A DNA stretch of 64,000 nucleotides from positions 6,634,001 through 6,698,000 of the forward strand of contig NW_027266274.1 in NCBI RefSeq assembly GCF_022045235.1, in the 5' to 3' direction. A program made the position numbers and the translations under genes. Each line of letters starts with the position of its first letter. Within the stretch, counting starts at the first letter, position 1. Shown piece after piece: positions 24,219-49,925 of this stretch. Under the pieces are notes generated by a model that searched no databases, was not told the origin of the DNA, and was given only the letters and a program-made list of their open reading frames with translations. Source of the DNA: Haliotis cracherodii (lineage: Eukaryota).

Positions 24219-24272
24219 GTTTCCTTAAAAATACTATGCGCGGGTTCACACTTTGTAAAAAGAAAAATAGAG
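24219..24272 (+). CDS. Voltage-gated proton channel (Hv3-like), internal exon: end of S2 and S2-S3 linker (VSLKILCAGSHFVKRKIE)
   Basis: Strong acceptor tttttttttcttgcag| and donor |gtgagt. 54 nt, phase 0/0. Peptide resembles the Hv1 segment IIFKLFVFRLEFFHHKFE and joins in frame to VFDA of the next exon. Confidence 0.85.
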
Positions 24273-24975
24273 GTGAGTTTTTACATATACGTTTGATTAT
24301 GTTTAATAAAACGCTGACGATTTTTTTGTTCTGATGATATTTTGCTAGTTGAGTGTCATACGAACATTTAATGAACATATACATGCTCACACGCGACGCT
24401 GATGCTGAGATACTGATGAAAAGGAAGACTCACCAATAAGACATGCGTGCATGTTTATTTCCAGATGAAAAAAACCCAGCAGAATTCATAAGGAATAACA
24501 AATGTTACAGAGGCGTAGTGCTGATAATATAACTGTTTTGTTGTTACGGCTTCTAATTGAAGATCTTAAAGGCAGCGCACGTCTTTCAATGTCGTCTTTT
24601 TTGGATCCTTTAGAACAAAATAGTTCTCATCAAGAGATGATGGAAATAGATTGATTTTGAGCTTTGACTTGGAGAATTATCTTGCCAGTGCATCTTGGGC
24701 GAAGAGAAATTGTCATGGAAGTGACATTTAACAATTTGGATATTTTAATGGATTTGTTGGAAAAAGCAGAATGGGTATTGTAAATCGATCGAATACACGA
24801 CGTTTTCCCTAGCAACTAATTAACACACTTGAAACCCGATCTAACGTTGCCAATATCCGTTTGAAAGTGGCTTAAAACTTTTTACAACAATACAACTGCG
24901 GAGGGTATTGATGCTAAATAAGTGTCTGAACTACTGTTTCGTGTATGAGCGTATGAATGGAAAACCGATGGTGAC

Positions 24976-25303
24976 GACCACCTCCGTGGTCTTGTGGTAG
25001 AGCATCTGACCTGTGAGTGGAAGGTCCGGGTTCGATCCCTGGTCGCGTTATTCCAAAATACTTGAAAATATGGTACTTGTTGTTACCCTGCCTGACGCTC
25101 GGACTAAGGGGGATAATACAAAACTGGTACACTCGGAGTCAGTATACTGTGTCTGAGTGGGGTTTTAGTGCTGAACTGCGGCATGGTATCTCAGTGGGGT
25201 GGGAATTAGTCCGGACTAGCTTGTACTAGGAGCCACACACGTAAACGTGCGTGCTACGTGCAATAATCATCACGCGGCGTTAAACCCCATTTCACGTCAC
25301 CTC
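24976..25303 (+). mobile_element. SINE family D
   Basis: Imperfect TSD accga(a)tggtgac. Confidence 0.85.
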
Positions 25304-25745
25304 ACCGAATGGTGACATCACTCATTATGGGCCAACATGGGACATGACGATTGGATCGGACTTCCCCCGAACAACCTGATTTCATTGAAATAATTCCTAG
25401 TCACCACACTCTTCGGACTTCAAGGATATCAGAAGGGCACTTGAGCTCCGTAGCCCTACGACGATACTACGTCAGTGTTAATGAACATGTAGAGGAATTA
25501 AGATAGGCATAGCGCCAAGATCACTTCGTGGAAGGAGGCCAAAGTAGGTGAACTGGTGAGCAAAATTACAGAGGCATGTAAATCATATATTCGAATCTGG
25601 CCCAGACAAACCAGTGAGCGAATGTATGAGCGATGTTTGTACCCGTCGGAGTCCGAAGTCATAGTACTTGACCATCCAATTCCCTTTTTAGTACGCTATA
25701 TGCTTTCATAAGTAGAATATTTGCTATAGACGACAAAAGGAGACG

Positions 25746-26460
25746 GGGGAACGTGTGGCCCAGTGGTCTAAGGCGCCGCGATTCGCCGTGCAGAGTTGCG
25801 TCCCTTGGGCACGCCAGAAACCTATGATTGTGGGTTTGAATCCCGGTTCGCCCCGATTATGTTTCTAGGTTTGTCAGCACCATACCCGAGCTCGTGGGTT
25901 TCACCGAAGTGGTAAACGTCTGAGACCTGCATCACTTCGGGCTTTCCTCCCAAGCCGTGATATAACTGGGATACTGTTTTGAATCCCGGTTCGCCCCGAT
26001 TATGTTTTTAGGTTTGTCAGCGCCATACCCGTGCTCGTAGGTTTCACCGAGGTGGTAAACGTCCGAGACCTGAATCAATTGGGCCTTTCCTCCCACATTA
26101 AGCTGGCACGCCATGATATAACTGGAATAATGTTAAACCCAACTCACTCACTCACTCAAAAGGAGACGCTGTACTGGTGGGTACAGATATCCTTGTGGTT
26201 TCGGTCGCCGCATGTCGCTGTGGAGAGTTTCGTCCCTTAAGTATGTCAGAAGCCTGTGATCATGAGTTCGAATCCACATTTTTCCATTGATAATATTTCT
26301 AGGTTTGTCACCACCATACCCGCTGTCGTGGGTTTCTCCGAAGCGGTTGATGTCAAGGACCTGCATCACTTCGGGCTTTCCTCCCACATCAAGCTGACAC
26401 GCCGTGACATACCCGAATACTGTTGGACTTCCAATGGGAGAGGTCAAAACTCACTCCTCC
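25746..26460 (+). mobile_element. Cluster of three family C SINE segments
   Basis: Copy 25746-25977, headless copy 25978-26158, diverged copy about 26168-26460. Confidence 0.8.
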
Positions 26461-26774
26461 ATACGTGGACCACTTGCGCGTTGCAAAGCCTTTCACGTGT
26501 CATCGTTTTGGTAGAACATGCAAATTGAAACACCGATGTAATTGCCAAGAACTCATCAAGACACATGACAGGAACATCAATGAACGTGATCGGAACATCA
26601 ATGAACACGACAGAGACATCAATGAACACAACAGCGACATCAATGTACATGACAAAAACATTGATGAAGACAAGCACGTCAATGCACCTGCTTTGAACAA
26701 CAATTCACGTGCAATGAGCATCTATGCACATGACCAGAACATTAATACACTTTACTACAACACCAAAGCAAACA

Positions 26775-27045
26775 GTGAGTAAGTGAGTTGGGCTTAACGC
26801 CGCTTTTAACAGTATTCCAGTTATATCACAGCGTGTCAGCTTAATGTGGGAGGAAAGCCCCAAGTGATGCAGGTCTCAGACGTTTACCACTTCGCAGAAA
26901 CCCACGAGCACGGGTATGGTGCTGATAAACCTAGAAACATAATTGGGGCGAACCGGGATTCGAACCTACAATCATAGGTTTCTGGCGTGTTCAAGAGACG
27001 CAACCCTGCACAGCGAATCGCGGCGCCTTAGATGACTGGGCCACC
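26775..27045 (-). mobile_element. SINE family C
   Basis: Near full-length homology. Confidence 0.85.
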
Positions 27046-28039
27046 GAGTTTCAGTATATTTCACCACATTACTGTGGTTGTTTAATAAACAGCCTTTGAA
27101 TAACGAACCCGGTGCTGGCTTGTTTTTCGTAATTCGAAAAAAGAATAACGAGTAACGAACCCATTGCTTACTTCAGGCCCCTTTATAAAACAGAAGTTCC
27201 CTTAAGACAATATAGGTTCACGTGAACAGGCTTAGATGTTTACGACATTATTCAACCCACGTAACACGACTATTGTGCCGACACACCAAGAATCATACTC
27301 AGTGTCAGTCTGAGGCTCCAACTATAAACCAGCGGATCCTACGATATGATAAGAGGCGTTACTCAACACACAAACAAAAGCTGTGCCAATTCCCGAAAAA
27401 GCACGCAACGCCGATGCTGACGCTAATATTCATACAAAAGAAAAGGCGAAAATCATCACCGATCTGCCTTGACTAGTCGGGCTCAGATCTATTTTCTATT
27501 GCCATTAAGAACAGTTTACTGCAGATGGGTTGGCGAGCAGGTACTCTTGCACTCTTCCATGGTGAAGATGCGGAGATGTGAAGCATCATTTGAAAGACGT
27601 AAACTGTTGTGAATCACGAATAGCGCAAGCTGAGATCTCGAACTGAAGAAAACTAACCACCTGTGAGAACTGTTCCTGGTCATCCCTGTAATTGCATATA
27701 TAATACAGGTATTGATTCTGTGTGGGAGGGGATATAAATCAAGTACAAGTAGAGTTCTGTGGGTTTCCGTTTGCATATTTGACCTCTTTGTGTATACCCT
27801 AGACGGAGAGGTCCTCTGTGGATTCATATTTCATTCATTTCCTATTCCCTGTTCCCCCGCAGTAACTTAATTACATTGTGGGATGTTTGGTTCACAAACT
27901 GATCGTGATTCCTACACACGTTTTTATGATACAGTCGTAATCGAATAATCAACTCTTGCTTGAGCAGATTGTTATGGAATAATGATCATGGAATGGTTTT
28001 GTTTATTTGTAAACAACGCTCATGTAACCAATGGAAATT

Positions 28040-28640
28040 GCTTACATTAATGCTATTGTCATGTTCATTGGTCTTCCTGTCATGTTCGACGATGTTCTTT
28101 TCGTGTTTCTGTTTCTGTCACGGTCATTTGTGCTCTTACAATGGTCTTTGATGTTCATTCCACTGTCATCTATGTTCTTGTCACGGTCATCTGTGTCCTT
28201 GCGATGTTCATCGATGTTCTTGTCATGTTTATCGATGTTCTTGTCACAGTTATCTGTGTTCATGTCATGTTTATTGTCTTCTTGCCATGTTTATCAATGT
28301 TCTTGTCATGTTTATCGGTGTTCCTGTCACAGTTATCTGTGTTCATGTCATGTTTATTGTCTTCTTGCCTTGTTTATCGATGTTCTTGTCATGTTTATCG
28401 GTGTTCCTGTCACAGTTATCTGTGTTCATATCATGTTTATTGTCTTCTTGCCATGTTTATCGATGTTCTTGCCATATTTATGGAAGTTCTTGTCATGTTC
28501 GTCGATGTTCCTGTCACGGCCATCAGTGTTCCTGTTACGAACATCGGTACTCTTGTTATGTCATTTGTCTTCTTTACATACTCTGCTATATACATTTTCA
28601 TCGATCTGCTTGTCATTTTCTTAATGTTCTTGTCGTATTT
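28040..28640. repeat. Degenerate 21-bp minisatellite related to 15505-16300
   Basis: cttgtcatgtttatcgatgtt-type units. An inverted relative lies at about 26540-26750. Confidence 0.8.
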
Positions 28641-29057
28641 AGATTTATTCGTGCCACATTCTAAACTTCGCGGCGATCATGTTCTTCTACAATACGATTT
28701 GTTCACTCGAACTCACAGGGTCTTTTGAAATATATTGAGTTATCCGGTATTCGAGACAAGCTTTATATGAAGTTTCAAGCACCCTTACAGCTAAGCCTAA
28801 ACCATTACAGCATATTCGAAATTATGTCGGTTTTTTTTAAAAAAAACATGCAGAAACCTGTTTCCCTCCACGTAAGTACCTTATATATCAACAGTTCCAT
28901 ACAGCTATCGACATTTAGTTAAGGGTTTTATAATCATTAATGCGAATAATCTGCTATCAAAACATTTCATTTAAAGTCATGTTCATTCACATTTATCACT
29001 TCGACACCCACCCTTTTGGCCCAATTGAATCTGTTTTGACAGATAATGGCAGATACA

Positions 29058-29320
29058 GTTTTGTTTGTTTGTTGTTTAACACCGCACTCAGCAATATTCC
29101 AGCTATATGACGGCGGTCTGTAATTAATCGAGTCTGGACCAACAATCCAGTGATTGACATCATGAGCAATTGGGATACAATAACATGCATCAAACTAAGT
29201 CAGCGACCCTGACCACCCGATCCCGTTAGTCGCCTCTTACGACAACCATAGTCGTCTCTTACGTCAAGCATGCCTTTTGGGTTGCTGAAGACCTATTCTC
29301 TTCCCGGATCTGCACGGGTC
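29058..29320 (-). mobile_element. Family A retroposon
   Basis: Full-length homology with a (tttg)n tail. Confidence 0.85.
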
Positions 29321-29489
29321 AAGTACGTACTCGGGATAATGACTAAACAAACCAGCTGTCTCAACTGGCTTGGAAGAGATACCCAGTCGAGGGGTTTGCA
29401 ATCACTCACAGAGTCCCAGTGGTAGCAAACAAGACATACCAGAGTCAGCTGATCGTTTGTTCAAGTACCAGACCCTCACTTATTTATAG

Positions 29490-29767
29490 GGGGTACGGGT
29501 GGCCCAGTCGTATAAGGCGCCGCGATTCGCTGTGCCGAGTTACATCCCTTGGGCACGCCAGAAACCTATGATTGTGGGTTCGAATCCCGGTTCGCCCCGA
29601 TTATGTTTCCAGGTTTGTCAGCACCATACCCGTGATCGTGGGTTTCTTCGAAGTGGTAAACGTGTGAGACCTGCATCACTTCGGGCTTTCCTCCCACATT
29701 AAGCTGACACGCCGTGATATAACTGGAATACTGTTAAAAGCGGCGTTAAATCCAACTCACTCACTCA
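29490..29767 (+). mobile_element. SINE family C
   Basis: TSD tatttatag. Confidence 0.9.
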
Positions 29768-30601
29768 TATTTATAGCATTGGTTTGTCAGTACCCGTGCT
29801 CACAATGGTAAACGTCCACCACCTGCTCCGATTGGATTTACTTTTAAAGCGTTCGCTCGTCTCGCCGTATACCCGGGTTCGATTCCCCACATGGGTACAA
29901 TGTGTGAAGCCAATTTATGGTGTCCCCCGACGTGATATTGCTAAAAGCGGCGTAAAACCATACTCACTCACTCCTTCCCAGCTGAAACGCCTTTATGCGC
30001 TACTACATCCCCTTCCTCATAAGAATTCCAAATTCAATCATAAATAAATATCCTCGAGGTTTCCTTTGAGATTAAGTAGCCTGACAATCATCTCGTGATC
30101 AGAGTTTCTCGTCTTGATGTGTGATAAAGTATAATGTGTAAGGCAGTGGACTAAGCCTACCTGCTTTTAGAACAGAACGCCAAGGAAATGCGTTTATGGG
30201 CACATATAAGGATAACCACGCGATAAATCGCAATGAACAAGGAAGTGCGGTTTATTTCATGATAAAATATTGTTCTTTCATGACGCCATTTCTGGAGATT
30301 CGAACAACTTGATGACATCGCATATTGGACGACGCTATTTTTGAGAGGGAAGTGCCAGTGAGTTCCTCGTAGCTGTAGCTCGGCAACATAGATATACGCA
30401 ATGGCCAAACGATCTCTTCCAAAATTGGGAGAGGTATGACAATCGGTGTTGGGAAAAAAAGTACAGATATTTAACCGACGTGAAAATTGTGAGAAAATGC
30501 GGGAAAGACCAAATGAAACCCCCTGTTGATTAAATGGACTTGTCCGACGGATTCTATTCAGAGAATCATCATTATTTAAATACGGGTAAATATATTTAAA
30601 G

Positions 30602-30780
30602 TATAGTTAACTACGGTTATAACGAACACGCTTATAACGAACTAACGGATATAACGAACTAACTTTTTACTCCCGTCTATATGCTGTAGTTATGCTGTAT
30701 ATATGCTTATAACGAACTACGGTTATAACGAACTAAAATTAGTAGTCCCTTTGAATTCGTTGTAACCGTAGTTTACTATA
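30602..30780. mobile_element. pogo/Tigger-like MITE
   Basis: TIRs of about 25 bp (tatagttaactacggttataacgaa / ttcgttgtaaccgtagtttactata), internal ataacgaac repeats, TA ends. Confidence 0.75.
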
Positions 30781-30829
30781 TGTACCTTTTACTTACATTC
30801 TGTCAAAGGCTGTACGTAATGTTGACATC

Positions 30830-30972
30830 TCATATAAGACATAAACGACTCGTGGTCGTTGTTTATCATACAATAAAACACTGCAGGGAGAATAAACCAT
30901 TCATGGTTTATTCTCTCTGCAGTGTTTTATTGTACGATAAACAACTCCCACTCGTTTATTTCTTGAATGAAT
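30830..30972. mobile_element. Palindromic (fold-back) MITE-like element
   Basis: Arms of about 70 bp centred on aataaaccat-tc-atggtttatt, few mismatches. Confidence 0.7.
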
Positions 30973-31388
30973 ATGTTTTTGCCTTCCGAGACAAGCGATC
31001 CGTTATGCAGATTGGAACCCATCATATTAGTTCCGTCAACTTGATACAGGCGACCAATTACGCTGGAACTCTGTAATAATTAAAGCTATGGAAACTTGTA
31101 CAATCAATAACGCGCGTGGACCGATGTATCACGAGTTCCATTCTTTGAATAAAGCCTTTGAATTGTCACTTCAAAGAAAATATTTATACCTTATTCGATA
31201 TCGCTGACAGAGCGATATAAAACGTTCCCTTACTAACACTAATCTATACTGAGATTAGTTCACCGTGAATGCATTCTGTCATGTCCTATATATCAGTCAT
31301 TGCCTTGTCTCAGTGGCATGGTAGCAATTCCTGCAACTGACTGCGCGAGAAGGAAGGTTGCATGCATGGAATGAACACCTGTGTTCAG

Positions 31389-31430
<42 letters not shown>

Positions 31431-31432
<2 letters not shown>

Positions 31433-31992
31433 TACCCAGAATATGTAGAGGGCGTCATGGAAAATGATAAATACAAAATTCTTTGGAATAGGCCCTTTTG
31501 CAGTATCCAGGCCAACAAACCTGATCTTGTCCTTTTTGATAAATCCAATGAAATCATTTATATCATTGAATTTTCTGTCCCTTCTGACAGTAATGTGATT
31601 GACAAGATTAAGGAAAAACATGGCAAATATGCAGACCTCGCATTCGAAATGTCACGCTTGCATCCAAAGTACCATGTTGTCCGACTCCCCATTGTTCTCG
31701 GTGCCTTAGGTTTGGTATCTCCCAATCTGTTGACTGACATTGGGAGAGTACCCGGGTTTGCAAGCAGGAATACAGCCCTTCTGACAATCTGGGTAATGCA
31801 GAAGGCTGCAGTGTTGGGGAGTCTTCACATTCTTAAATGTTCTGGGTGGGTTTGAGTAGGCAGCGCTTCCTGGGAGAAGTCCCATTCGCTGTCTAGGCTG
31901 CGTGTAGAGGGGGCAAGGGCCCTGAGCTGATGATGAGCCTAACCTGACTGTGCCAGGATCACCAAAACCCTATTTGCTGCAATTAATCTGTA
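31431..31992 (+). mobile_element. 5'-truncated R4/Dong-type (restriction-like endonuclease) non-LTR retrotransposon inserted in a (TAA)n tract
   Basis: Peptide ENDKYKILWN...NKPDLVLFDK...IIEFSVP...KYADLA...PIVLGALG...QKAAVLGSLHIL matches the RLE domain. (TAA)n lies on both sides (31391-31430 and about 31993-32036). Confidence 0.85.
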
Positions 31993-32037
<45 letters not shown>

Positions 32038-32479
32038 GCATTCATAGAAGATATTTATACCTTCTTAATAACGCCGATCTATACTTAATCTGTAGATAAT
32101 AAATGAATGAATGAATGAATAAAGCTGCTCTTTTCGGCACAGATTTACATTTGAAACAGCGTGGGGGTCTTGTGGTTGCAGATTCATATCTTACCCGAGT
32201 GTTCATTGAAACATTTTATTTTTACACCAAGTTACCCAGCCACAGATTACTGTTAATTTACTGTTGCAGGAATGAGTGATGGTTAAATAATCATAATATA
32301 CATTTAACAACATTTTTTTTTAATTTCATTAATATAAAAAAAAACTCGGTATACTTCCTTTTCCTCCTCAGTTTAGATAAAACACAGAACGTGAACGAGA
32401 GAGCTTAAAATTAAAGCTTTCAACAATATTTCAGTTATATCGCAACATTTTGAGAATCGGGTTGGAAGCGGTCTTAAAG

Positions 32480-32685
32480 AACCCATGCTTGTCGTAAGAG
32501 ACGACTAACGGGATCGGGTTGTCAGGCTCTCTGACTTAGTTGATGCATGTCATCATATCCAAGTTGCGTAGATCGATGCTTAATAATGTCGATCACTGGA
32601 TTGTCTGGTCCAAACTCGATTATTTACAGACCAACGTCATTTCGCTGTAATATTGCTAAGAGCGACGTTAAGCAACAAATAAACT
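32480..32685 (+). mobile_element. Family A retroposon, degraded 5' end
   Basis: acccatgcttgtcgtaagagacgactaacggg...gacgttaagcaacaaat. Confidence 0.8.
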
Positions 32686-32931
32686 AACACACATATCATG
32701 CAATATTATGTCCCTTCAATGAGGAAATCGCCCAGATCTTAAACCAATCTCTCTATGGTAAAAAACCCACGAGCATGCTTATGTTGCTGATAAACCACAA
32801 ACAGTGCGAATCTGAGAGTTGAACCCACGATCATACAACTCGGTTAAACCAAAGGGGCAATTTGCGGCGTCCAGGAGACGCTGGCCACCTGACTTCAAGG
32901 CAATAAACGCATAAGATAAAGAGACAAATAA

Positions 32932-33082
32932 CTACAGTAAACAACGGTTATAACGAACTCAAAGGGTCCAATAATTTTAGGTCATTATAACCGTAGTTCG
33001 TTATTAGCATGTATATAGCAAATGGACGGGTCCAATAAGAAGTTCGTTATATCCGCTAGTTCATGAGAAGCGTGTTCGTACA
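32932..33082. mobile_element. Second, inverted and partial copy of the pogo/Tigger-like MITE
   Basis: Starts tacagtaaacaacggttataacgaac. Body is the reverse complement of 30602-30780. Confidence 0.6.
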
Positions 33083-34944
33083 AGGGGATTTGTTATCCCA
33101 TTTAGAAACATTTATTTAGCTAAGCCACTCTCGTGTTCTGAAAACGTAATAAAAGCCCCCTTTGCTGTTTTTGAGGAAAAAGTGACTGAATTTACATTCG
33201 ATATATTTCAATCAGCATCAAACAAACTATAACGAAAGAGCTGAAAGGAATATTTGCAACGTAATGCTATATACATAAGACAGGATATTATGGCAAGAAT
33301 GAGACATCCCAGGGACACCAATTACGTTTGCCAACATTGAGAAAACGGGAATTTGGCCATAAAGTTTAAATTAAATTTAAGGTATATCGTCATCTCATAT
33401 CGTTAATAATTGACAAAAATCCTATTCCCGTTCACTGATTTACCCAAAGCTAGAAAAATTAAAACTAGTGAAACAGTCTCATTGTTTCATATTCAGATCC
33501 ATGCGTACAGATTCATACGACTCTTGCTCAAAAGTTGGTTGATCACGTTACAGCAAGGCCTTTCAAAATTTGAAGCATCAGTGACCAAAAAGGTCAAATG
33601 CAATTCTCTGTTTTGACTTGTACAATATGTTCAACAACTGACTTGTCATTTAGCGAACACCAGGTATCATAACTATTTGATAGTGATTCATAAACAAATG
33701 CAATGATATAGTCGGGTTCCAACAATGGACTCTGATTGTGATAATGGAAAAAGTTTTGCCGGTTGTAAACTCATAATAATTACTGTCAATTAAAAGATTA
33801 CCTCGTTTACGTGTACGTAGATCTGACCCCAAAAGCGATGTTATATTGCCGTTATAGCGTTAAAAGCGTTCATTCTCTCGTTATGTGAAAATCTAGTTAT
33901 ACAGACCGACCAGTACACGTTCAAAGCCAACATAAGTCCAATGGAAGTTTTCTCGCCCAGACGCCAAGGTCATGGCTGAAGAAACTCAAACAGTCCAAAC
34001 GTGGCTGCTAGAAGATATCAGGGTCATTATGGAGATTTGACGGGATCCTGTTGAAACTGGCACAGTGATTTGCACTTAAGCTGAGGAGAATTGAAACCAT
34101 CACACAATGGTTTGGGTGCAATTAGGTGAAATCCATTGTCACAGTTAACGAACAGTAGATCCGCATCGTGCCAATATGTTCCATAGGATTACCACATACG
34201 TGGCTTACGATCCTATTGATTCTGATGAAGACGTGAATTTATATACCTGATACTGATTTGCCACTTGGGCTTAAGTGTGCAATTATTGGATACCAAGTGT
34301 ACGTTGTGTTGAATCCGTTTCTTGCTAATAAAACAAAGGGATTGTAACGGCATAATTGGTTTCCAGACGTGAAAACATGAAAGTATTCTCCAACTGATCA
34401 GTCTCCATACATTTGACGAGTCTCTGTAGACGAAAACAAATATAAGAAATTATGTAAGAAAAATGGAAAGCGAAGTGTCACGTTTGTGTAGGTTTGAGGG
34501 AACATCTTTCGAGAACATTCAACTCTCGGTGCCTACAGCAATATTACAGCTTTATGACGTTGGTCTGTAAATAATAGGGTTTGAAAACAAGCCATTGCAC
34601 CAGGAGGAATTCCCATGATGGCGGCCATATTGGATATTGTATGGATATTTAAGACAAGTGTTTGCCACAGTGGTGAGTGAATGAATGAGTGGGATGTTAA
34701 GCTCCGTAACGCAGCATCCCACAGCAATATCACGATATCGGCTTTACACCTTCACATACTGTTCTCAAGTTGGGAATCGTAACAGGATCTTATGCGTGTC
34801 GAACGAACGCTGAAACCAGTAGGCTATCACATCCCAAAATATCAGCAACAGCTGAACGAGGGCGTAGCGATTATGTAATACATTGTACTTACGTTATCTG
34901 TTGCTGAAAAAGTTTACATTGTCCCTTGTTTGGGTCTATATTTT

Positions 34945-36898: not shown

Positions 36899-37037
36899 GT
36901 GTTCGATGCACTCATCATCCTTGCGTCCTTCATTGTCGATCTGGTGTTCCTCAAGGGGCTTGCAGACTTCGCTATCGATGACTCCATATTTATACTCGCC
37001 TTCCTCCTTCCCTGGAGAGTTATACGTGTCGTAAATA
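36899..37037 (+). CDS. Hv3-like proton channel exon: S3-S4 (VFDALIILASFIVDLVFLKGLADFAIDDSIFILAFLLPWRVIRVVN)
   Basis: Acceptor tctttgcag| and donor A|gtaagt (phase 1). S3 keeps both Asp of Hv1 (LDAVVVVVSFILD). S4 has the Hv signature WRxxRxxN. Confidence 0.93.
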
Positions 37038-38399: not shown

Positions 38400-39260
38400 C
38401 CATATACATCTAGCGTAACATTTTACATCGATATACAGACTGAACTGTTGAAATCTCTTTTCGGGAATCTATATACCCACACTTATGAATGGTTCTCAAA
38501 GATGCAATGTCATTAGCTTAAGTCCTACGAACAGCCACTGCAGTACCGCATGGCGGTATATTACATAAACAACATTACATCCCTATCATCGCTGCCATAC
38601 ATACACAACGTCCGCACAATGATGTCTTTTAATTGCATAAGGAGTCCTGTTTTCCTCGGTTAGAGCAGCGGATCCATAAATCTCTCCTCAGGAACTATGT
38701 TCTCTTGTCATATAGTGCTATACGATGACGTAATCTTCCTCCTTCCCACGATTAACATCACCCAGATGAATATCTGGTGACGAAACTAAGTTAGAACTGC
38801 CAATCCAATAAGTGATTTTTCATGTTTACCCCATGCTTAACAAACCCGGTTTAGACGTATATATTTTTAAGCAACAGGGAGTGTTGTACAAACCCAATCA
38901 GCGAGAGTCCGCAGCGAGTAGGAGTGTTGGTTTGTCCCATTTGCCTGCACATCAAACGAAACTTCATCCATACCCTGGGATGACACACTGGTGGCTAGTC
39001 CCCAATTAGCCAGTGTTTCCACTCGGTTGACTTCTGTAGACTCTCCCAAGAGAAGAGGCAGTCAAACGCCATTTGGCCTGACATAAGCTGGAAGACACTT
39101 CTGACTGCTGGCGTCCTCTCCGACCAGTCATGTATGAAGGACTCGGGACGAGACTTCCTCGGGGAAAGGGGTTTTATTGATGGGGAGACTTGAACCCATT
39201 TGTTTGGTCTGGAAATGAAATGGTGATTTTTCAGATGACATGATACATCTTTGCGTCATT
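38400..39260 (-). pseudogene. Possible very decayed DIRS-type (tyrosine recombinase) retroelement remnant
   Basis: Only short motifs, such as SSLCQAKW resembling the DIRS YR N-terminus. Similar weak hints at about 4750-6450 (+) and 10150-10450 (-). Confidence 0.25.
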
Positions 39261-39745
39261 ATGTTTGGGATGTCTGATGCTCAGAGAACAGATGGACAAA
39301 GTATGTTAAAACTCTTAGATGTAGCTACTTCCGGGTAGTTTTCCATCTGGCCGTCTGTGCAGACAACTGCGATACGTTGTTTATATCTGGTGAAGTGTCC
39401 TGATGTTGGGATGTGGACTTCAAAACCCATCTCTTCTTAACCCATAATTGACACTGACATGCGAATATGAGATTCCCAAGGTAAATATAAAAAAAACACT
39501 GAACACAACATGTACCTTTTGGTAAATAACATTGGCACATAACCCTTTTACTATAATACCCTTTGTTCTTAAAACGTTGCTACCGACCATGAAATAACGT
39601 CAAAATATTATGTTTCTAAAGACACCTCCAACCCCTTTACCCATCCGAAAATGACCACGCCCATACACTTTCGCGCATTCCCGACGATAAAATACTCCAT
39701 CTGAACCGGCATATTGTCGTTGTAGGAGAATCTGGCTTGGGGGAA

Positions 39746-40745
39746 CATTATTTTATACTTTCTTGCAGATGCCATTTTAACACCAATACGCTGTATACCA
39801 CATGTACATACGCAGATTATGGATGTAGTAAAGATACATTATTTTATACTTTCTTGCAGATGCCATTTTAACACCAATACGCTGTATACCACATGTACAT
39901 ATGCAGATTATGGATGTAGTAAAGATACATTATTTCATACTTTCTTGCAGATGCCATTTTAACACTAATACGCTATATCCCACATGTACATACGCAGATT
40001 ATGGATGTAGTAAAGATACATTATTTTATACTTTCTTGCAGATGCCATTTTAACACCAATACGCTGTATACCACATGTACATACGCAGATTATGGATGTA
40101 GTAAAGATACATTATTTCATACTTTCTTGCAGATGCCATTTTAACACCAATACGCTATATCCCACATGTACATATGCAGATTATGGATGTAGTAAAGATT
40201 CATTATTTCATACTTTCTTGCAGATGCCATTTTAACACCAATACGCTATATCCCACATGTACATATGCAGATTATGGATGTAGTAAAGATACATTATTTC
40301 ATACTTTCTTGCAGATGCCATTTTAACACCAATACGCTATATCCCACATGTACATATGCAGATTATGGATGTAGTAAAGATACATTATTTTATACTTTCT
40401 TGCAGATGCCATTTTAACACCAATACGCTGTATACCACATGTACATACGCAGATTATGGATGTAGTAAAGATACATTATTTTATACTTTCTTGCAGATGC
40501 CATTTTAACACCAATACGCTATATCCCACATGTACATATGCAGATTATGGATGTAGTAAAGATACATTATTTTATACTTTCTTGCAGATGCCATTTTAAC
40601 ACCAATACGCTGTATACCACATGTACATATGCAGATTATGGATGTAGTAAAGATACATTATTTTATACTTTCTTGCAGATGCCATTTTAATACAAATACG
40701 CTGTATCCCACATGTACATATGCAGATTATGGATGTAGTAAAAGA
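39746..40745. repeat. 91-bp tandem repeat, about 11 near-identical copies
   Basis: Unit starts at 39746, 39837 and so on. Confidence 0.95.
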
Positions 40746-41499
40746 TAAATTATTTAAGGATAAACTGTAATAATTTGACATTATGATAATTGATCATAAT
40801 TGACTTGTTCGGTACATTTTGAATGAAGTTTCAATGAATGCAGCATTGCCATAGTAATCGTCTTTCAGACACTGGGGGTCGTTTTGACCATAACTTTTCA
40901 GATTATTGCCTCGCGTGATATTGATTTGTCTGGTTCAATTGGTTCAGTGCTTGTCATGCTCAAAACAAATGTATTTTTCCAACTTATTTGTCGGGAAGAC
41001 ATGATCAGCTATGTCACTTTTATGTAAGTTAATTGCAGTTTAACCCAGAACTATCAGACTTGAAATATTGAGAGAATTGGATTCGTGTCTTGTTCGCGTA
41101 TGTGTAGCAATAATTTTAGTTACGTGACGCCCATTCTGAAAATGAAAGTTGTAGAATTCAGGTTTTGGGTTATCAGCTGTCACAGTTGTGATTGAAGTAG
41201 ACCTTAGGCCATTAAAAGTGTGTTAAGACTCTTTATGTTATGGATCGGAATTGGCTTATTGTAAAACGTTCAGTCACGCGGGAAGGGTTAGCTTTATTCC
41301 AAGCAATCATTAAAAAAAATACTTCTGATAAATAGACAGTATACATCGACTTGAACTGTTTATAAAAAGAAAAGAAAATGTATACAATTCATTTAAAAAT
41401 ATTTTGTTGTTCAGTCATAAATGGTACAACAAGTCAAAAACAACAAATTCGTGGCACTTTGGATGAAGCTAAAAAAGCAATGAAACACATCTGGGGGCA

Positions 41500-42350
41500 T
41501 AACTGTCACTTTTCACACAAAAATAGATGAAAGCTTCTGAACACTTCCATAGCACCTCAAGTAATGGATTCGATGTCTTGTGTGACCTTTATTGGGTATG
41601 CGACCCCGCTCCTCCAATAACACACGTTCCTGCTGCTGTACTTTGTTCACAAGCTTGGACGTTGTATTATCTACTGCGTAAGATGTTCCCAAAAATGTTC
41701 TATCAGTGAGAAGTTGGGTGAGCAAGACGGCCAAGGAGTATGTTAGCAGCGTGATGCCTTGCATTGTCCTGTTGGAGCAGTATCCCTTGGGGCTGTCTTC
41801 TGTGAAAGGCTGCGGAATGGCATCTCTGTAACGTTGGGTGTTCACAATGTATGTCCTCGGATGACGTGCCTTCCTGACACCACAAATCAGGCCTCACACC
41901 AAGATGCCCCCGCCTCAAAAAGGTTGGCATCATCGGATGCATCCAAAAGCCAATCGTCGTTACCCGCGCATCCGATCATCAGAGTGGAACACGTTAAATC
42001 TGCTCTCGTCACTGACCAATACCCTTTGACGTTGGGCGTTCATAAATGTATGTCCTTGGATGCATCCAAAATCCAATCATGGATACACCCTCGTGCGATA
42101 ATCAGGATGGAACACGTTAAACCTGCTCTCGTAGCTGACCAGTACCCTTTGACCAATTTCATCGAACAGTTCGAGACCACTGGCGTCTTTTTCGCCGATG
42201 ATGACGGGTCATGTGATCAAGGCCAGTCTGCGGTGGGTTCTGTAGGTCCAAATTCCTGCAGCATACGAAAAAGTCTTGACAACGTCCATGACGTCACCGC
42301 AGATGGTAGCCTCCTGTTGGGTGGTCACACATGGTCTACCGATTGGTGAC
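41500..42350 (-). mobile_element. Decayed Tc1-like transposase fragment
   Basis: Frameshifted pieces LQRYRDAIPQP and LLQQDNARHHAAN (QQDNARPH motif). No clear TIRs found. Confidence 0.65.
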
Positions 42351-43454
42351 TTGTCCCTCATGTGCTCAGCATGGTAGTATCGCTGAAGTCATGTGGCATT
42401 TGTTTCGCATGTTTTTATGGACAGTGATGTTTTGAGATTGTATACTCTCTATTCATTTTCATCTAGTGCTGTCATAAAACACCTTTTTCATAATTCAATC
42501 TAACACTATATACTTTCCTTTGATCTGTAGTATGCTTCAGCTCGAGGGTGGCCAAGCATGTAAAGATTAGTTTGTTTGTTTTTTGCCGCTATACGTATAT
42601 ATATCGATGAACAAACATACATATGGAGGATTGCCCCTTTCATACACGAATGCTTAGGAAGGGAACGTAGAGACATATGACAAACAAAAGAAGGTTTACG
42701 GTTTTATATTATGAACATATCACATCCTATCGACAAATAACACCAAGTTGGGAGTATCTGATGGGAGAATAAATCTTCAAACAAGCTGAGGTCTCCGCAA
42801 TGCTTAATGATGTGTTTCGCGACCAGATTATCATCTGAGGGATGCTGAACCTAGGGATGAGGAAGATTATGTCGACGTATTCACCTACAATCACCAACTG
42901 ACAAACAATGAGTGATTTCAGATGAACAATTGACTTACCTTTGCATGTGTTTGTAACGGGTGACACGGGTGGGGCAAGATGCGCCAAAAATCATCACTAT
43001 TTGATAAGGATTCATAATCACATGCTCATGCTATAGTCGGAATCGTACACTCGACTTTGCTCTCGGCAGATATGTCTTATGAATATGGAAAGGATTTTGT
43101 CGCTATTATTCCCAGACCCGATGCTCGTACTGAAAATGAGTCCTTATGCAATTACGATGGCGATCCATAACAGTATTGTGTATGTGGGCGTTGTGAATGT
43201 ATGGTTTCAATAATAAGGATATTATTTTTTGGAAAAAATACCGTCTTTCAGAACCAAAGTAATTATTCATTTTTTTCAAGTAAATGACATTTGTTGTTTG
43301 CCCTGCTATTTGTCACTGGTGTTAATCGACATTCGGAAAGTCATTCTTTCCAAATATAAGGATGGTTGTGGCGTGATGAGGTTGTATATCCCTAGCTAGC
43401 TATTGTTGAGTTATTGAGTTATGAGTATGTATGTATTCAATCATGTATTACCAG

Positions 43455-43570
43455 GCCTGCTGGTAGCTGTGATCGACCATGAGCACGTCAAATTACGGCT
43501 GCTATACAGTCGGAAGAAAAAATTGGACAAGACTGTCGAGAATCTCCGGAACGAGGTTGACGAGCTCAAG
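43455..43570 (+). CDS. Hv3-like exon: end of S4 and coiled coil (S-LLVAVIDHEHVKLRLLYSRKKKLDKTVENLRNEVDELK)
   Basis: Acceptor ttaccag|GC completes AGC (Ser) with the previous exon. Donor AAG|gttggt (phase 0). Heptad-like Leu/Val spacing as in the Hv dimerisation coil. Confidence 0.9.
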
Positions 43571-44092
43571 GTTGGTGTCATGTTTCGTGAGGCTCACGGA
43601 ACTGTTTACATTTCTACACAAATCATCTGGACGTTATGCCACGGAATTAACAGAAGACATTACTACCATGGACTTTGGTTTTAAGAATTGGCATAAAGGC
43701 ATTATTTTCGTCTCGATACTGACACTTGAGAAACATAATAAATAATAAAGCACGCGTCATTGTAGGTCAATTAGAAGGATGTCTGTCGTATGTTTGTACT
43801 GATAACTTGGGTTCTGGATTGTGTCACTGTGCTTTCCTTTCAACCCTTTCAAAATATTTTTTCTTTTGCTGTTTTGATGTAAAAAAAAGGTTAAGGAAAT
43901 GTCATGTTGCTGTATCGGATCTGCCTTAATTTCTGTCAGTATGAAAAAAGTTCCTGGTTACAAAAGAACGTAGTATTACAACAGTCCGGTTGTTTAACTC
44001 GATTCAGTTTAAGATGCCCTCGTTTTTCGCGTGATTGCATAGAAACATTCATTACCTCGGTTTATAACCTCATTCTGTCTTGCTCTAAACAG

Positions 44093-44165
44093 GGTCTGCT
44101 TCAAGATGTTCGGAGTTTTTGTGTGAAAGAAGGATTGGAGGAATGGAAGCTTGATAACCTCTTGG
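44093..44165 (+). CDS. Hv3-like exon (GLLQDVRSFCVKEGLEEWKLDNLL-G)
   Basis: Acceptor ttgctctaaacag| and donor G|gtaagt. Phases 0/1 fit both neighbouring exons. Confidence 0.85.
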
Positions 44166-45248
44166 GTAAGTTAAAACTATATGTACTGTTACGATGGAAT
44201 ATTCCACATATGTGCATTTGTTACATGTCCAATGTTTCTCATCAGAGCTTGGTTCAAAATGACAAGGTCACAATGTCTTTTTTTTATTTTTAAACGTCAG
44301 GCAAAACATTTGTTCAAAGTTAGCAACAATGGATGAAAAATGTAGGCAGGAAAAGATAACTCTGCAGTTAAAATCCGGAAAATCGTGGTCGAGGATAAAA
44401 ACCGGACGATATGCCGGACAGAACCAATGACTACAGATTACCTTTAAATTGTTTTTTAAAAGACTCGTACGATGATGAGAGACTTTGTAAGACCTTTTTA
44501 GAACAGCTTAACATACCTTTCTAATTTGTAGTGGTTGTATTTCATCCTGAAACATCCTTGTGTAATGCAGTTTGATGGAAGTTGTACATCTTCCGTACCA
44601 CCTCTCATTAATGCCAGGCTGCCGCACTTTCCTCATCAGAAATCCTTCTTCCAAACTTCCTAATACGATTTTACATTTGAAGCTCCCTTTATTTCAAAGT
44701 TTCCGGGGTTTTTTTTTCATTTCGGGATAATGGGAGCGACGTCATCAGTTTGAAACTTACGTGACCTCGTAAGGAAGAACAGTCACTTTGGATACAATTG
44801 ATTTGTTAAATGTGCAGAAGATACCTACAAAACCGGTTTATCGATCCTATGAGTAGCGGCAACGCCAATTCAATTTAGCGGTATCTTCACATTTCACTTA
44901 TTACGTAACCACACATCAGGTTATTTAAGTCGATTAGGCTTTTAAAGCACCAAGGAACGCTCATAAAACACCTGTGTTGCACATTTATTGGGCTTTAAAA
45001 GCATTTAGGTATTGGAGCTGATGTTTCTGTCCTAATAATTCTCATGCCCAGGCGTTCTAAAGCACTCGAATGGAATTACCTTAAACAGAGGGAGGTTGCT
45101 CCTTGTGTTAATGCATTTAAATGTTCAGACTTGTCAGTGACATTAGTATATCCGTTGGTACCATGGCATACCTCAAGGCTGTTTTGTCTTAACGCATTAA
45201 TCACACTGGTAACTTATTTGCTTCAAGCTGGCCACTCAGCCAAGCCAG

Positions 45249-45413
45249 TGAGTGAGTGAGTATGGTTTTACGCCGCTTTTAGCAATATTCCCGCAATATC
45301 ACGGCGGGGGACACCAGAAATGGGCTTCGCACATTGTGCCCATGTCGGGAATCGAACCCGGGTCTTCGGCGTGACGAGCGAACGCTTTAACCACTAGGCT
45401 ACCCGACCGCCCC
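45249..45413 (-). mobile_element. tRNA-derived SINE family B (about 170 bp, tRNA-Asp/Glu-like head), young copy
   Basis: A box gtagcctagtggtt, B box ggttcgattccc, (tgag)n tail, TSD tcagccaagccag on both sides. Confidence 0.9.
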
Positions 45414-46602
45414 TCAGCCAAGCCAGAGATGTATAGTAAGTCATAAATAAACATGTATTATAGCTACGATTGTATCCATAATATCTTCAGTACACAAGAG
45501 GGAGAAACATATGAGTCATTTTTACCCTGTATTCTAAGGGGATAGTTTGGAATACATGCTCTGGCACCATAAGTATAGCTTGTTAACATAAACGAACTGA
45601 CAATCGGACGAAAAAAATCAAACGGAATTTTCTTTTCGGAACATGCGTCTCCCTTTTAAGCGAAAAGTAATTTATTTTTTTTGTGGCTCACCCAATCTAT
45701 CACTCTCCGTCTATAGCCTGTATTAAGCAAACAGAGCTGGTGCACAATCCACCAGGCTTAACACGAAGACGTCATGGAGCAAATAACACAGGACCCTTAA
45801 CATCCCATGCCATACTTCTCTGCTCCCTGTAGGAAAGTAACGTGATCGATCAACAACCATATCACTGTAAGATCTGGCATAACTGATGTTTTCCTTTGGA
45901 CATATGCAGGTTTACCTAAGTATTTTTTAGCTTCCAGTACATGTATATGATTTAGCTCTAACACTTTCGCCCTGATATATAAACAGATCCTCCAGCCATG
46001 ATAGAGTACCAAACTTCCATATGTAAACAGTTCAATAGCTGATATATTTTGCTCCCAATTGCGCAACACGATCCTACTTTTATATCAGCCACCACGTGCG
46101 TTTCACCGCCGTTGCTATGTAACATTTGATGTATTGTTTGTTGGTTTTCCCTAACAGCCGTCTCATGCGCAGACTACCAGTTTGTGTGGACAGCGAGTAG
46201 GCTGTTGAAGTGAGTGACGCACGCATCTTATGACGTCAGCTTAGCCTATTATGACGTCATCGTTATTGAAAACACGTGCACGTTTCACTTCACTATTATA
46301 ATCTCAATCTAGTTTGCAGTATATGCTTTTTGTTTAAATACACTGTTATAACTGAGTTTCAAATCTGTTTATCAATGATTTCTACTAATTCAAATGCAAG
46401 GACTATGAGAGTTATGAAACATTTAATCCGAATTCAATAACTTCAGGTTTCTTTTCATTTTTTCTTTCCGATTATAGTTCCTTGCAACAATTTCTTGAAG
46501 AATGTCACAGATGTAACCAATATATTGGAAACATGTAGGGCTACTGTTGCATGGTCACTGTTAAACAAATACTTATACTTGTCTTGTGTCTTCATACGAA
46601 TG

Positions 46603-46835
46603 TACCCGGCTAGAGAATATGTCTTCAGCAACCCATGCTTGCCGTAAAAGAGGCGACTAACGGGATCGGGTGATCAGGCTCGCTGATACATGTCATCGTA
46701 TCCCAACTGTGTAGATCGATGTTCACGATGTCAATCACTGGATTGTCTTGTCCAGACTCGATTATTTACAGACTGCCGTGATATAGCTGGAATATTGCTG
46801 GGTGCGACCTTAAACAACAGACAAACAAAACAAAC
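46603..46835 (+). mobile_element. Family A retroposon
   Basis: Homology, with an (acaa)n tail. Confidence 0.8.
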
Positions 46836-47495
46836 AATGCTCATGATTGGGGTTCGAATCCAAGAATTGCCCTCATGATTATGTCATCCTCGGTTTGGCA
46901 GCACTATACCAGTGCTGGTTTCACCAAAGTGACTGAAATTCTGTTCAAAGCGGCGCAATACCCCTACCATTGACACTCTCACATGGATGCCCTTTATAAG
47001 TCTGAATATTCTACACCGCCAACTCATCAACATTTTCAATCATGCACAAGTCTGTAACTCTTCATTTGTCTGTCTATCCATCTTCGTCAGCAGCAAAGTA
47101 ACCAATATGATTTGTCAGTGTGTATAATACAATATACATGTATTTGCAATTGTACATGTAAATTACTATTTAGTTTTAACAAATGATCTCCATTTTTAAT
47201 ATTGATATTTGTCATAGTACCTTTCCTTATAAGAAATAACATTTTCTTGCAAAATGAATGTCTTTTAGAGTTATGCAGTTGTACAAACATATTATTACGC
47301 TTGTCAAATATAATAATGATTCCTGTGTTTAAAAATGTAAGTTATATGTAAAAAGAATCAAATGTTGGCTATAACTTTCATGTCTGAGTATTATTTTCGA
47401 ATTAAGCGTACGGAAGTAATTGGGTTTAATGTCCAATATGTTAATATGATCTGTAATAATGATGATAAAATAATACCCCCTACTCCTATACACTA

Positions 47496-47740
47496 CCCGT
47501 GAAGATCCGAGTAAGAATTGGTCTTCAGCAAACCATGCTTGTCGTGAGAGGCGGCTAACGGGATCGGGCGGTCAGGTCGCTGACTTGGAAGATGCATGTC
47601 ATCGTATCCCAATTGCATGGATCGATGTTCATGATATCAATCAATGGAGTGTCTGATCCAGAATCGATTATTGACAGACCGACGTCATATAGCTAGAAAT
47701 ATTGGTGAGTGTGACGTTAAACAACAAACAAACAAACAAA
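47496..47740 (+). mobile_element. Family A retroposon, full length
   Basis: acccgtgaagatccgagtaagaattggtcttc...gttaaacaacaaacaaacaaac. Confidence 0.85.
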
Positions 47741-47800
47741 CTGAAGGAGCAAACAAAACGCAAGGTGGCCCTTTTACACCATTTTGTTATCTTAAGGATA

Positions 47801-48853
47801 TACTCTTCACAAAAAGAAACGCAAAGCCAGATTTGTGTGAGGTACGAAAATACAGTCATTCATATGAGGAACCGTAGATGGTATTGAGCTAAACTGTTGT
47901 GGAGAGAACACTTGGTGATTGTTGTCATCTTAGTTATCGGTACATAGGAAAAGTCCAAGGTGAAGGTCAGCTACCATCAATAACGCTGTATACGATCGGC
48001 CGTTGTCCTTCTGTAATACACCGTTGCCGTTGGCTGGACGTATGGTAGGAGAATTTCGTTGATGTATCGTTGAGCCGTAAGATTGCCCTGGATATGGACC
48101 AAACCTGTCCTCCATGATGAGAGATAACCGCCCACATCATAACGCTACACCCACCAAACCTGTCCACTTCCTGTACGTAGTTTCCGGCGTAACGTTCTCC
48201 CTGACGTCTGTAGACCCGTTCTCTTCCATCCCTTCGACGGAGGATAAATCTTGATTCGTCGCTGAACCAGACGTCTCTCCATTGTAGTTGAGGCTACACT
48301 TTGTGTTGACAACACCAATGCAGTCGTTGTTGACGATGTTGTCGAACAGGACGTCTTGCTCATAGACCAGTTGCTCTTAAACGTACTGTCTGGTTGGAGA
48401 TTCTGCACAGTCCTGATATTTGGGATGCGGTTGAGGTGGCTGTGTTCGTCCTTTCATGTAGGTGGCGCAGTCGGATGTAGAGATCTTGGGCGGGGATGGT
48501 TACTCTTGGTCGTCCCGACCTTGGTCTCGGCATGTTGTTGAACTGTCACTGTTCGATTGACACAGATGCTATGCAATCAAAAAACATACACATCAATACC
48601 GTTCATAGTGCTGCTGCATGGGCAGTGCGTGCAGCTCCATGGCCCTTTTGTTAATGCACTGGGTGCGTTATTTTCCGAATCCTACGTGTTTCCCAACTAA
48701 TGGTTTGCATGTCCTTGTTGGGATCATTTTGATCCGGGAAATTTGTTACTGACTCTATAACACATGAAACCTCTTCATTTTGCACCTATTGGTCCAGTAA
48801 TTTTGCTTTTATAGCCAAACATATCCGTATTGCGTTTCTTGTTTTGAAGAGAA
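47801..48853 (-). mobile_element. Decayed Tc1/mariner DNA transposon with TIRs and TA target-site duplication
   Basis: Left end TA|tactcttcacaaaaagaaacgcaa is the inverse of right end ttgcgtttcttgttttgaagagaa|TA. Frameshifted transposase pieces (DRFGGCSVMMWAVIS) on the - strand. Confidence 0.8.
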
Positions 48854-49557
48854 TACATGCATGTACACCCAGTTGTATGTAAAAAGAATTAAAAAAAGGG
48901 AAAACGTACGTTCCCCGTTTGGATAAAATGCAATCGAGCCACCATCAGCTGTTGGAAACTATTCGTCATCCCAACTAAGAAACGTTTGGCATTGGCGTTC
49001 ATTCCATGTTGTTTCGATACTTTTTTTACAAATAATGTGCCGGGCAAAAGAAAATTTTGACCCATATTTGATGGTGGCTAAAATGAAACAAACAAGAAAT
49101 AGTCTTTGAAAGGCATTTAGAAGTGATACACGTAAGGAAGAGAGTTCATGGATGCCAACTTCTTTATTGAATGTTGTCTTCCTCCTAATATGGCGTTGAC
49201 ATCCATAAATAGCTTCCTGAAAACAAGAAATAGTTATTCGTTTATGGTGCATTTGATATGGGTATCGTGGTTGTGTTTTTTACCTCAAAGTGTTTTGGCG
49301 ACTGCTTTCAGTCCAATAACGTTTTTTTAACGTTTGTAATTCTCTGGTCAATTTCAAGTGTACACTTTCATTTGCCCGACAGTATAATTCTTACAGTGTA
49401 AACTAAACTGCCAAAAAATATAAAATAATAGTATCTTGCTGAAAACCAGATATTCTTACCTAAATAACTTAGATATAGATGTAAAACACAAATTGGTGTC
49501 ATCAACATAATACACTACCCTTACGTCAGTTTCAATTTGCCTGTATCTTTTTTACAG

Positions 49558-49925
49558 GAAGATTCGCCCCAAGACGCCGAAAGGACTCCAAGTTCTACAC
49601 ACTGGTGAAGCTAGTAATGAGCACAGCATCAGTAGCTGATGACAAGGACTCTGTCAGTTCCTCCTCCATGGAGATGGAGATCAATGAGTTCGCGCGTAGG
49701 AACACAGTGCTTAATGACGAAGGTAGCACATGCACCAGCAACGAGAACACTGTTAGCAGTATAAACTTTCTCACTGTGCCCACCTACGATGATTGCCGTT
49801 CCATGTCAGACAACGAAAGCGATAGGGGTGACTCCTCTCGGCGAAGCTCCTTCAATGACTTAAATTCTGCATCTAAGAAAAAACGAAAAAAATCCCCGAA
49901 TCGTGTAAATTTCAAAATACCCTAG
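49558..49925 (+). CDS. Hv3-like terminal coding exon: Ser-rich cytoplasmic tail ending ...KKKRKKSPNRVNFKIP*
   Basis: Acceptor tcttttttacag|GA completes GGA. Open to TAG at 49923-49925. The five exons total 750 nt (249 aa plus stop) with no internal stop. Confidence 0.85.

Follow-up and report, generated by a model that had tools for sequence, protein, structure and literature searches.

The question raised by this locus is what kind of channel, if any, is encoded in a 64,000-nucleotide stretch of Haliotis cracherodii DNA (contig NW_027266274.1, positions 6,634,001 to 6,698,000 of the forward strand; hereafter the window). A first-pass annotation, made from the letters alone, had read there a voltage-gated proton channel (Hv) of the Hv3 type, whose fourth transmembrane segment (S4) lacks its first arginine (R1). 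We find that the window gene is indeed a new member of the published Hv3 family and was correctly identified. Very probably, the window holds exons 4 to 8 of an eight-exon gene for a protein of 448 amino acids (aa), the abalone orthologue of the Aplysia californica channel AcHv3, which is the type member of the 'unconventional' Hv3 branch. Residue numbers below are those of this protein as recorded in RefSeq (P0152), hHv1 denotes human Hv1, and window position 1 corresponds to G000:C11:6634001.

Five exons in the window and three upstream of it

Within the window, which contains no N, the five coding exons (Table 1) sum to 750 nt, that is 249 codons and a stop. Every internal boundary reads ag...gt, and the two split codons are AGC (Ser) and GGA (Gly). 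Reading of splice sites and phases gave exactly the coordinates and the length of the 249-aa stop-free product that had been proposed. Exon 4 translates as VSLKILCAGSHFVKRKIE, an exact match to P0152, and the translation of exon 5, the S3-S4 exon, runs VFDAL...FLLPWRVIRVVN, with the S4 core LPWRVIRVVN. An alignment made by phmmer with the human chain 5oqk of Hv1 (hHv1 numbering equals the chain index + 79) agrees with the proposal that both acidic residues of S3 are kept (D220 and D231) and that the first S4 arginine is absent, its place being taken by Leu254.

As this product is stop-free and consistent in phase, it could be taken for a complete, stand-alone small channel lying wholly in the window. 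However, the exon at 24219 is not a first exon, because it opens with Val200 directly after a splice acceptor and has no ATG, and the product would be devoid of S1 and most of S2. The homologue match P0002 (448 aa) aligns to the window from residue 199 onward only; residues 1-198 gave no window match above noise in tblastn with seven homologues, and a hydrophobicity scan of the open segments of the window's + strand did not reveal S1 or S2. The upstream part was found by a six-frame search of the abalone's own genome, on the same contig and strand (G000:C11), as three phase-matched exons that complete a 448-aa protein identical to the RefSeq one. Together the eight exons total 1347 nt (448 codons and a stop) over a coding span of about 143 kb, and all eight translations are exact, ordered substrings of P0152. 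This match refutes the stand-alone 249-aa channel, which retains virtually no probability; the exons of the first-pass annotation are real, while its product is the C-terminal part (residues 200-448 of 448) rather than the whole channel.

P0152 is an abalone 'uncharacterized protein' in RefSeq and a member of the P0002 cluster, with 448-aa orthologues in sister species. It is true that the open reading frame (ORF) track missed the channel as a whole, because the gene is spliced, but the gene was not missing from the databases, being already in RefSeq under that uninformative name.

The gene is transcribed and spliced

The last exon is contained in 19 sequencing runs, none of which is recorded as RNA and 14 of which were guessed to be RNA (contig totals of 58-117 million letters). 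Contigs of four runs from four studies were aligned to window positions 44000-49950. In run X1, record 1 (4227 nt) carries 44091-44164 at its positions 43-116 and 49557-49950 at positions 117-510; in run X4, record 16 (744 nt) carries the same exon 7 and exon 8 blocks at positions 1-71 and 72-465. As the contig positions are adjacent in both, the exon 7-8 junction is crossed without the 5.4-kb intron. Both runs are likely RNA, and the junction evidence that the first-pass annotation had proposed to look for is thus at hand for this intron. Exon 8 is covered by contigs in all four runs, in X2 and X7 the exons are covered in separate contigs, and unique bins of the intron have zero contig depth, the deep bins being repeats. 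The gene is transcribed and spliced. The remaining six junctions are supported by their canonical splice sites, by phase and by agreement with the RefSeq model.

One might still suspect a decaying pseudogene copy, as the genome holds at least five copies of the family and the introns are repeat-rich. Against this stand eight intact exons, canonical sites at every splice boundary, the existence of spliced contigs, and a complete lack of differences among four abalone species over residues 179-404. We regard the pseudogene as very improbable. Differences between the four abalone orthologues number 2-16 over the 448 residues, and all fall at residue 7 or in the stretches 69-178 or 405-432.

An optional cassette exon between exons 7 and 8 had trace contig depth in run X7 only. 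Judging from the reading frame, its inclusion would shift the frame and give a truncated protein of 370 aa, like the annotated sister-species isoform X2 (P0154). The X1 contig extends 3717 letters past position 49950, which suggests a 3' untranslated region of several kb. At position 49892, contigs of three runs show an A>G difference.

The protein is almost certainly an orthologue of AcHv3

When the 56-aa S3-S4 exon was searched against 1.84 billion representative sequences, 166 proteins matched at E≤0.001 and 35 at E≤1e-10, and because of this number of matches the likeness is not a matter of chance. Among the best 150 matches, 106 have the motif xPW(R)xxR and none the canonical RxWRxxR; 41 have a W-R motif of another form (for the most part LLWR..R, from short fragments, with Leu also at the R1 position) and three carry none. 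Against PDB, the exon matched two distinct sequences at E≤10, both Hv1 (mouse chimera 3wkv, 6e-4; human 5oqk, 0.043). With the whole P0152, solved Hv1 structures scored E values of 7e-10 and 4.3e-8, as compared with 1.2-1.8 for Ci-VSP and 0.9-1.9 for the sensor of the sperm Na+/H+ exchanger. In P0152, Pfam recognized Ion_trans and no other family (28.3 bits with a cut-off of 25; residues 171-262, profile positions 23-106 of 241), and it recognized no family in three of three single-exon pieces. The protein is a single S1-S4 voltage-sensor domain without the S5-S6 pore module. In having this four-helix sensor and no pore domain it resembles conventional Hv channels such as human Hv1, AcHv1 and the abalone's own P0226.

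The first-pass annotation had named grouping with VSP or TMEM266 as an outcome that would speak against an Hv3 channel. Its VSP part is not borne out, as the E values above are lower for Hv1 by many orders of magnitude. An identity as VSP was also rejected on the domain content: unlike Ci-VSP, P0152 has no phosphatase domain (no such family in the Pfam scan at E≤1). As for TMEM266, no sequence of this protein was among the matches of any search.

A word-indexed search with P0152 gave 73 proteins, of which all the named ones are molluscan, mostly 'uncharacterized' and some called 'voltage-gated hydrogen channel 1'. Conventional sequences, from sponge to mammal, were collected by searching with an exon of a canonical Hv gene of the abalone itself. 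From these, a careful tree of 52 rows (34 xPW and 18 conventional) and 299 columns was built in IQ-TREE under LG+C20 PMSF, with UFBoot/SH-aLRT supports and with P0152 standing in for the window gene. All 18 conventional rows are Hv, and the tree is without TMEM266, VSP, AcHv2 and Hv4 rows. The xPW proteins separate from conventional Hv at 100/100, with the caveat that the two outgroup rows from non-bilaterians are long and do not fall on one side of a branch. Within the xPWRxxR clade, P0152 and AcHv3 belong to a seven-row gastropod clade supported at 100/100, and a quick tree agrees. AcHv3 was represented by P0009, an A. californica record of 980 aa with Leu429 and Pro430 as in PMC10911540; over the S3-S4 exon it is 73% identical to the abalone protein. 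With this clade, this identity and a shared S4, the orthology to AcHv3 proposed from the letters alone is almost certain.

Substitutions in the sensor are shared across the Hv3 clade

Many sensor residues of conventional Hv channels are kept in the abalone protein. In S1, the selectivity aspartate, on which the first-pass annotation had made its identification depend, is present as D46 in exon 2 (aligned to hHv1 D112), together with E53 (E119) and D57 (D123). S2 keeps H186 (H140), E199 (E153) and K203 (K157), and S3 keeps D220 (D174) and D231 (D185), with I223 and I224 at the positions of V177 and V178. In S4, W256 (W207), R257 (R208), R260 (R211) and N263 (N214) are all present.

Other sensor positions depart from conventional Hv: Leu254 stands for R205, Pro255 for L206, Thr43 for V109 and Leu196 for F150. 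The three-arginine signature RxWRxxR is therefore absent, with R1 replaced by Leu254 and the tryptophan, R2 and R3 present, and so is the conserved S2 phenylalanine of the charge-transfer centre. What the S4 core LPWRVIRVVN does show is xPWRxxR, the motif that defines the unconventional Hv3 voltage sensor (PMC10377628). These changes are not peculiar to the abalone, as seen when the 34 xPW proteins were compared site by site with the 18 conventional Hv. The position of R205 is Leu in 31 and Val in 3 of the xPW proteins, and Arg in 18/18 conventional ones; that of L206 is Pro in 34/34 against Leu in 18/18. At F150 the xPW proteins have Leu (27), Ile (5), Val (1) or a gap (1), where all 18 conventional ones have Phe, and at V109 they have Cys (13), Asn (10), Thr (4), Ala (3), Met (1), Val (1) or a gap (2), where all 18 have Val. 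The D112 position, by comparison, is Asp in 31/34. Judged from these aligned sequences, the Hv3 clade has replaced two of the four residues of the hydrophobic gasket, Val109 and Phe150.

The abalone protein shares with AcHv3 (Chaves et al., FEBS J 2023, PMC10911540) an identical S4 core, the same selectivity aspartate and the same two gasket residues, Thr in place of V109 and Leu in place of F150. The likeness extends beyond the sensor, to the helix DHEH...YSRKKK that follows S4, to the start of the last exon and to the C-terminal RVxF ending. After N214, the abalone sequence reads SLLVAVIDHEH, unlike the GI..SVK of conventional channels. Residues D271, H272, E273 and H274 of this motif (window 43473-43484) occur in 30, 28, 28 and 30 of the 34 xPW proteins, and the DHEH motif is not in the conventional Hv rows shown. 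Placed at the cytoplasmic base of S4, this cluster could bind metal or sense pH.

Two loops also differ from those of conventional Hv. There are three extra residues between S3 and S4, and the S1-S2 loop has about 125 aa (residues ~58-182), compared with roughly 10-20 aa. It contains six histidines and N-glycosylation sequons at residues 113, 124, 152 and 155. In its proximal part, F75 is conserved in 25, Y83 in 20, P84 in 26 and W108 in 27 of the 34 xPW proteins. The C-terminus after N263 has 185 aa; both it and the loop are of the Hv3 kind, albeit smaller than those of AcHv3. The protein ends in K-S-P-x-R-V-x-F (window 49890-49922, the last 11 codons), as do 8/8 gastropod orthologues compared, and the form of this ending suggests an RVxF-type docking site for protein phosphatase 1.

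Predicted structure

An AlphaFold2 (AF2) model, based on an alignment of 142 rows, has a mean predicted confidence score (pLDDT) of 71, reaching about 85-97 for residues 21-110 and 181-330 and at least 90 in the sensor domain. S1 is modelled as a helix over residues 33-82, running beyond the membrane into the loop and followed by a short helix at 94-103 (pLDDT ~85-92), while residues 118-167 are disordered. S2 spans 174-207 and S3 215-237, and S4 together with the following segment forms one helix, 243-314 (pLDDT about 88-97). The tail past residue ~355 is mostly disordered, and from residue 376 its pLDDT lies below 50. Part of the proximal S1-S2 loop is thus predicted to be an ordered extracellular module, which would be a small addition to the described Hv3 features; the loop of AcHv3 was described as without obvious organisation (PMC10911540). 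When the AF2 sensor was compared by VIA-align, the voltage-sensor domain of Ci-VSP gave the highest Z score (13.4, over 135/136 residues), a fold it shares with our protein, and the Hv1 chimera 3wkv gave 9.3 over 139/140.

A weakly voltage-dependent proton shunt is the probable activity

AcHv3 is a proton-selective leak whose conductance-voltage relation (gH-V) has a slope of about 60 mV per e-fold, as compared with 4-6 mV for AcHv1 and AcHv2; its authors suggested an intracellular location (PMC10911540). In hHv1, the hydrophobic gasket consists of V109, F150, V177 and V178, and when it is made less hydrophobic the closed channel leaks protons (Banh et al. 2019, PMC6754559). The hHv1 mutation R205W brings faster kinetics, weaker voltage dependence and a closed-state leak described as 'comparable' to that of AcHv3 (PMC11853527, 2025). 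The abalone sequence combines changes at the positions altered in these leaky mutants (109, 150 and 205), but its natural Thr, Leu and Leu-Pro differ from the residues tested, and F150L was not found among the mutants in the passages of PMC6754559.

By analogy with AcHv3, the abalone protein would let H+ pass selectively along its own sensor. As there are only two gating arginines, S4 contains a proline and the gasket would be weakened, little gating charge would move and the closed state would seal poorly, making the protein an H+ shunt that is weakly voltage-dependent and in part constitutive. The protein might reside in an intracellular membrane and might dimerise via the helix that follows S4. 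We consider such conduction, with little gating charge and poor sealing, rather probable.

Two other functions need to be weighed. On one hand, the protein could extrude protons in the ordinary way, with the steep voltage gating of Hv1 or AcHv1, if the altered S4 mattered little. After all, it keeps two arginines, the countercharges and the selectivity aspartate, and hHv1 with V109T or F150A alone does not leak (PMC6754559). However, AcHv3, with the very same LPWRVIRVVN, leaks and has the shallow slope given above (PMC10911540), R205W alone is enough to make hHv1 leak (PMC11853527), and the genome already has two canonical RLWR genes for that role; an ordinary extruder is thus quite unlikely. 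On the other hand, the sensor could have ceased to conduct protons and become TMEM266-like or regulatory, signalling via its long tail. The absence of R1, the replacement of F150 and the proline in S4 would be in line with this idea, as would the phosphatase docking suggested by the RVxF-type tail end in all eight gastropod orthologues, and loss of the channel function was initially suspected for Hv3 proteins (PMC10377628). Yet the selectivity aspartate, R2, R3, W207 and N214 are all in place, and the orthologue AcHv3 conducts protons selectively (PMC10911540), which leaves a non-conducting sensor unlikely.

Several points weigh against reading the window gene as an AcHv3-like leak channel. 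The leak and the weak voltage dependence are extrapolated from Aplysia. The gasket argument is suggestive only, because single hHv1 gasket mutants (V109T, V109A, F150A) do not leak, and it takes V109A/F150A to produce a leak, of 0.16 of the open gH (PMC6754559). Of the two histidines of hHv1 for external Zn2+, H193 is replaced by Ala in the abalone protein, a further difference from conventional Hv, and the Pfam family VGPC1_C, the Hv1 coiled coil, is unmatched in P0152. Unlike AcHv3 with its 980 aa, the abalone protein has 448 aa; its S1-S2 loop of ~125 aa with six histidines compares with 299 aa and 13 histidines according to PMC10911540 (14 by our own count over residues 61-360 of P0009), and its C-terminus of ~185 aa with one of 535 aa. 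Since the loop and the C-terminus are much shorter, trafficking and regulation may differ from those of AcHv3. Hv and VSP cannot be told apart by fold, and Foldseek against PDB gave no match at E≤0.001, the best being 0.22. The whole-protein analyses were run on P0152 as a stand-in for the joined window sequence. Lastly, exon 7-8 is the sole junction seen in contigs, and the runs are RNA by guess.

More tentatively, the Hv3 leak may be an evolved design of the whole clade, built from loss of the S2 phenylalanine, a small or polar residue at V109, R1 changed to Leu or Val and L206 changed to Pro. Such proteins might serve as regulated H+ shunts, possibly organellar or shell-related, and not as voltage-gated extruders; the idea fits the five Hv3-type genes kept beside two canonical ones. 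A role of the window gene in calcification, neurons, shell formation or the response to acidification is speculation.

What the identification provides is, first of all, a functional name for a gene listed as 'uncharacterized protein' in four abalone genome annotations. To our knowledge, no natural Hv channels other than Hv3 have been reported to leak protons. The candidate causes of the leak and of weak voltage sensing are Leu at R1, the S4 proline, Thr at 109 and Leu at 150. Because the 448-aa abalone protein is less than half the size of AcHv3, it would be an easier construct for dissecting which of these substitutions cause the leak. In the literature searched there was no paper on an abalone Hv channel, although abalone sequences may be listed in the cladogram and alignments that supplement PMC10911540. 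Similarly, replacement of Phe150 is not stated in the passages of the literature examined or in the main text of PMC10911540, whose Fig. 1 or supplement may show it.

At least five Hv3-type loci in the abalone genome

Protein and profile searches of the genome gave the same seven loci, five of the xPWR type and two of the canonical RLWR type (Table 1); these counts are lower bounds, and there was one weak match on contig C78 (E 0.005). This vetigastropod thus carries no fewer than five genes of the Hv3 type in addition to the two canonical ones. In the tree, another abalone protein, P0173, was placed elsewhere, with cephalopod and bivalve sequences. One paralogue lies on the same contig as the window gene, about 0.3-0.45 Mb away and on the opposite strand.

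Table 1. Coordinates of the features discussed. Bare numbers are window positions; positions with a contig name (C) are genomic.
Feature	Position	Strand	Remarks
Coding exon 1	G000:C11:6540456-6540517	+	N-terminus; 93.5 kb before window start
Coding exon 2	G000:C11:6609868-6609992	+	encodes S1 including D46
Coding exon 3	G000:C11:6617692-6618101 (L001 1535-1944)	+	S1-S2 loop, most of S2; ends 15.9 kb before window
Coding exon 4 of 8	24219..24272 (54 nt)	+	start phase 0; acceptor ag, donor gtgagt; residues 200-217; inner end of S2 with K203 (hHv1 K157) and S2-S3 linker only
Coding exon 5	36899..37037 (139 nt)	+	start phase 0; residues 218-263 and first base of codon 264; S3 (D220, D231), S4 (L254, P255, W256, R257, R260, N263)
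Coding exon 6	43455..43570 (116 nt)	+	start phase 1; residues 264 (2/3)-302; S4-continuing helix, DHEH motif, basic YSRKKK stretch; likely coiled-coil start
Coding exon 7	44093..44165 (73 nt)	+	start phase 0; residues 303-326 and first base of codon 327
Coding exon 8	49558..49925 (368 nt including TAG)	+	start phase 1; residues 327 (2/3)-448; mostly disordered cytoplasmic tail, ending KSPNRVNFKIP
Optional cassette exon	46158..46209 (52 nt)	+	acceptor ag, donor gtgagt; translation matches P0154 tail
xPWR locus 1 (window gene)	G000:C11:6540456-6683925	+	protein and profile search
xPWR locus 2	C11 6.18-6.26 Mb	-	L006/L009/L017/L022/L026/L031/L036
xPWR locus 3	C22 ~2.0 Mb		L007/L024/L025/L028
xPWR locus 4	C7 27.67 Mb		L011/L027/L034
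xPWR locus 5	C7 27.82-27.83 Mb		L014/L021/L033/L037
RLWR locus 1	C3 ~2.47 Mb		P0226 'Hv1-like'; L008/L016/L018/L030
RLWR locus 2	C1 ~38.44-38.45 Mb		L015/L029/L032/L038
Reverse-transcriptase ORF	20588-21919 (444 aa)	+	RVT_1, E 3.8e-10; intron 3; retroelement remnant
Tandem array	15491-16297		21 nt x 39
Tandem array	39745-40755		91 nt x 11.1 copies, 96%; intron 5
Tandem array	56975-58308		89 nt x 15 (444-nt super-unit); downstream of gene
Tandem array	58924-59579		AGT run x 219
Intron 7 repeat segments	45194-45591, 46587-46984, 47383-47780, 48975-49173		from contig depth

Repeats in and around the introns

In each of the four runs, contig depth over the four deep segments of intron 7 ranges from hundreds to almost a million, and chimeric joints are frequent. 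These segments are short interspersed repeats, either strongly expressed or of high copy number, outside the channel mRNA. Of four ORFs tested in Pfam as possible genes nested in the introns, only the reverse-transcriptase ORF scored (RVT_1), and the other three were without a family. Transposase-like fragments lie near 41.7-42.3 kb and 47.9-48.5 kb, with no Pfam match. The large tandem arrays produce long spurious ORFs in the ORF list.

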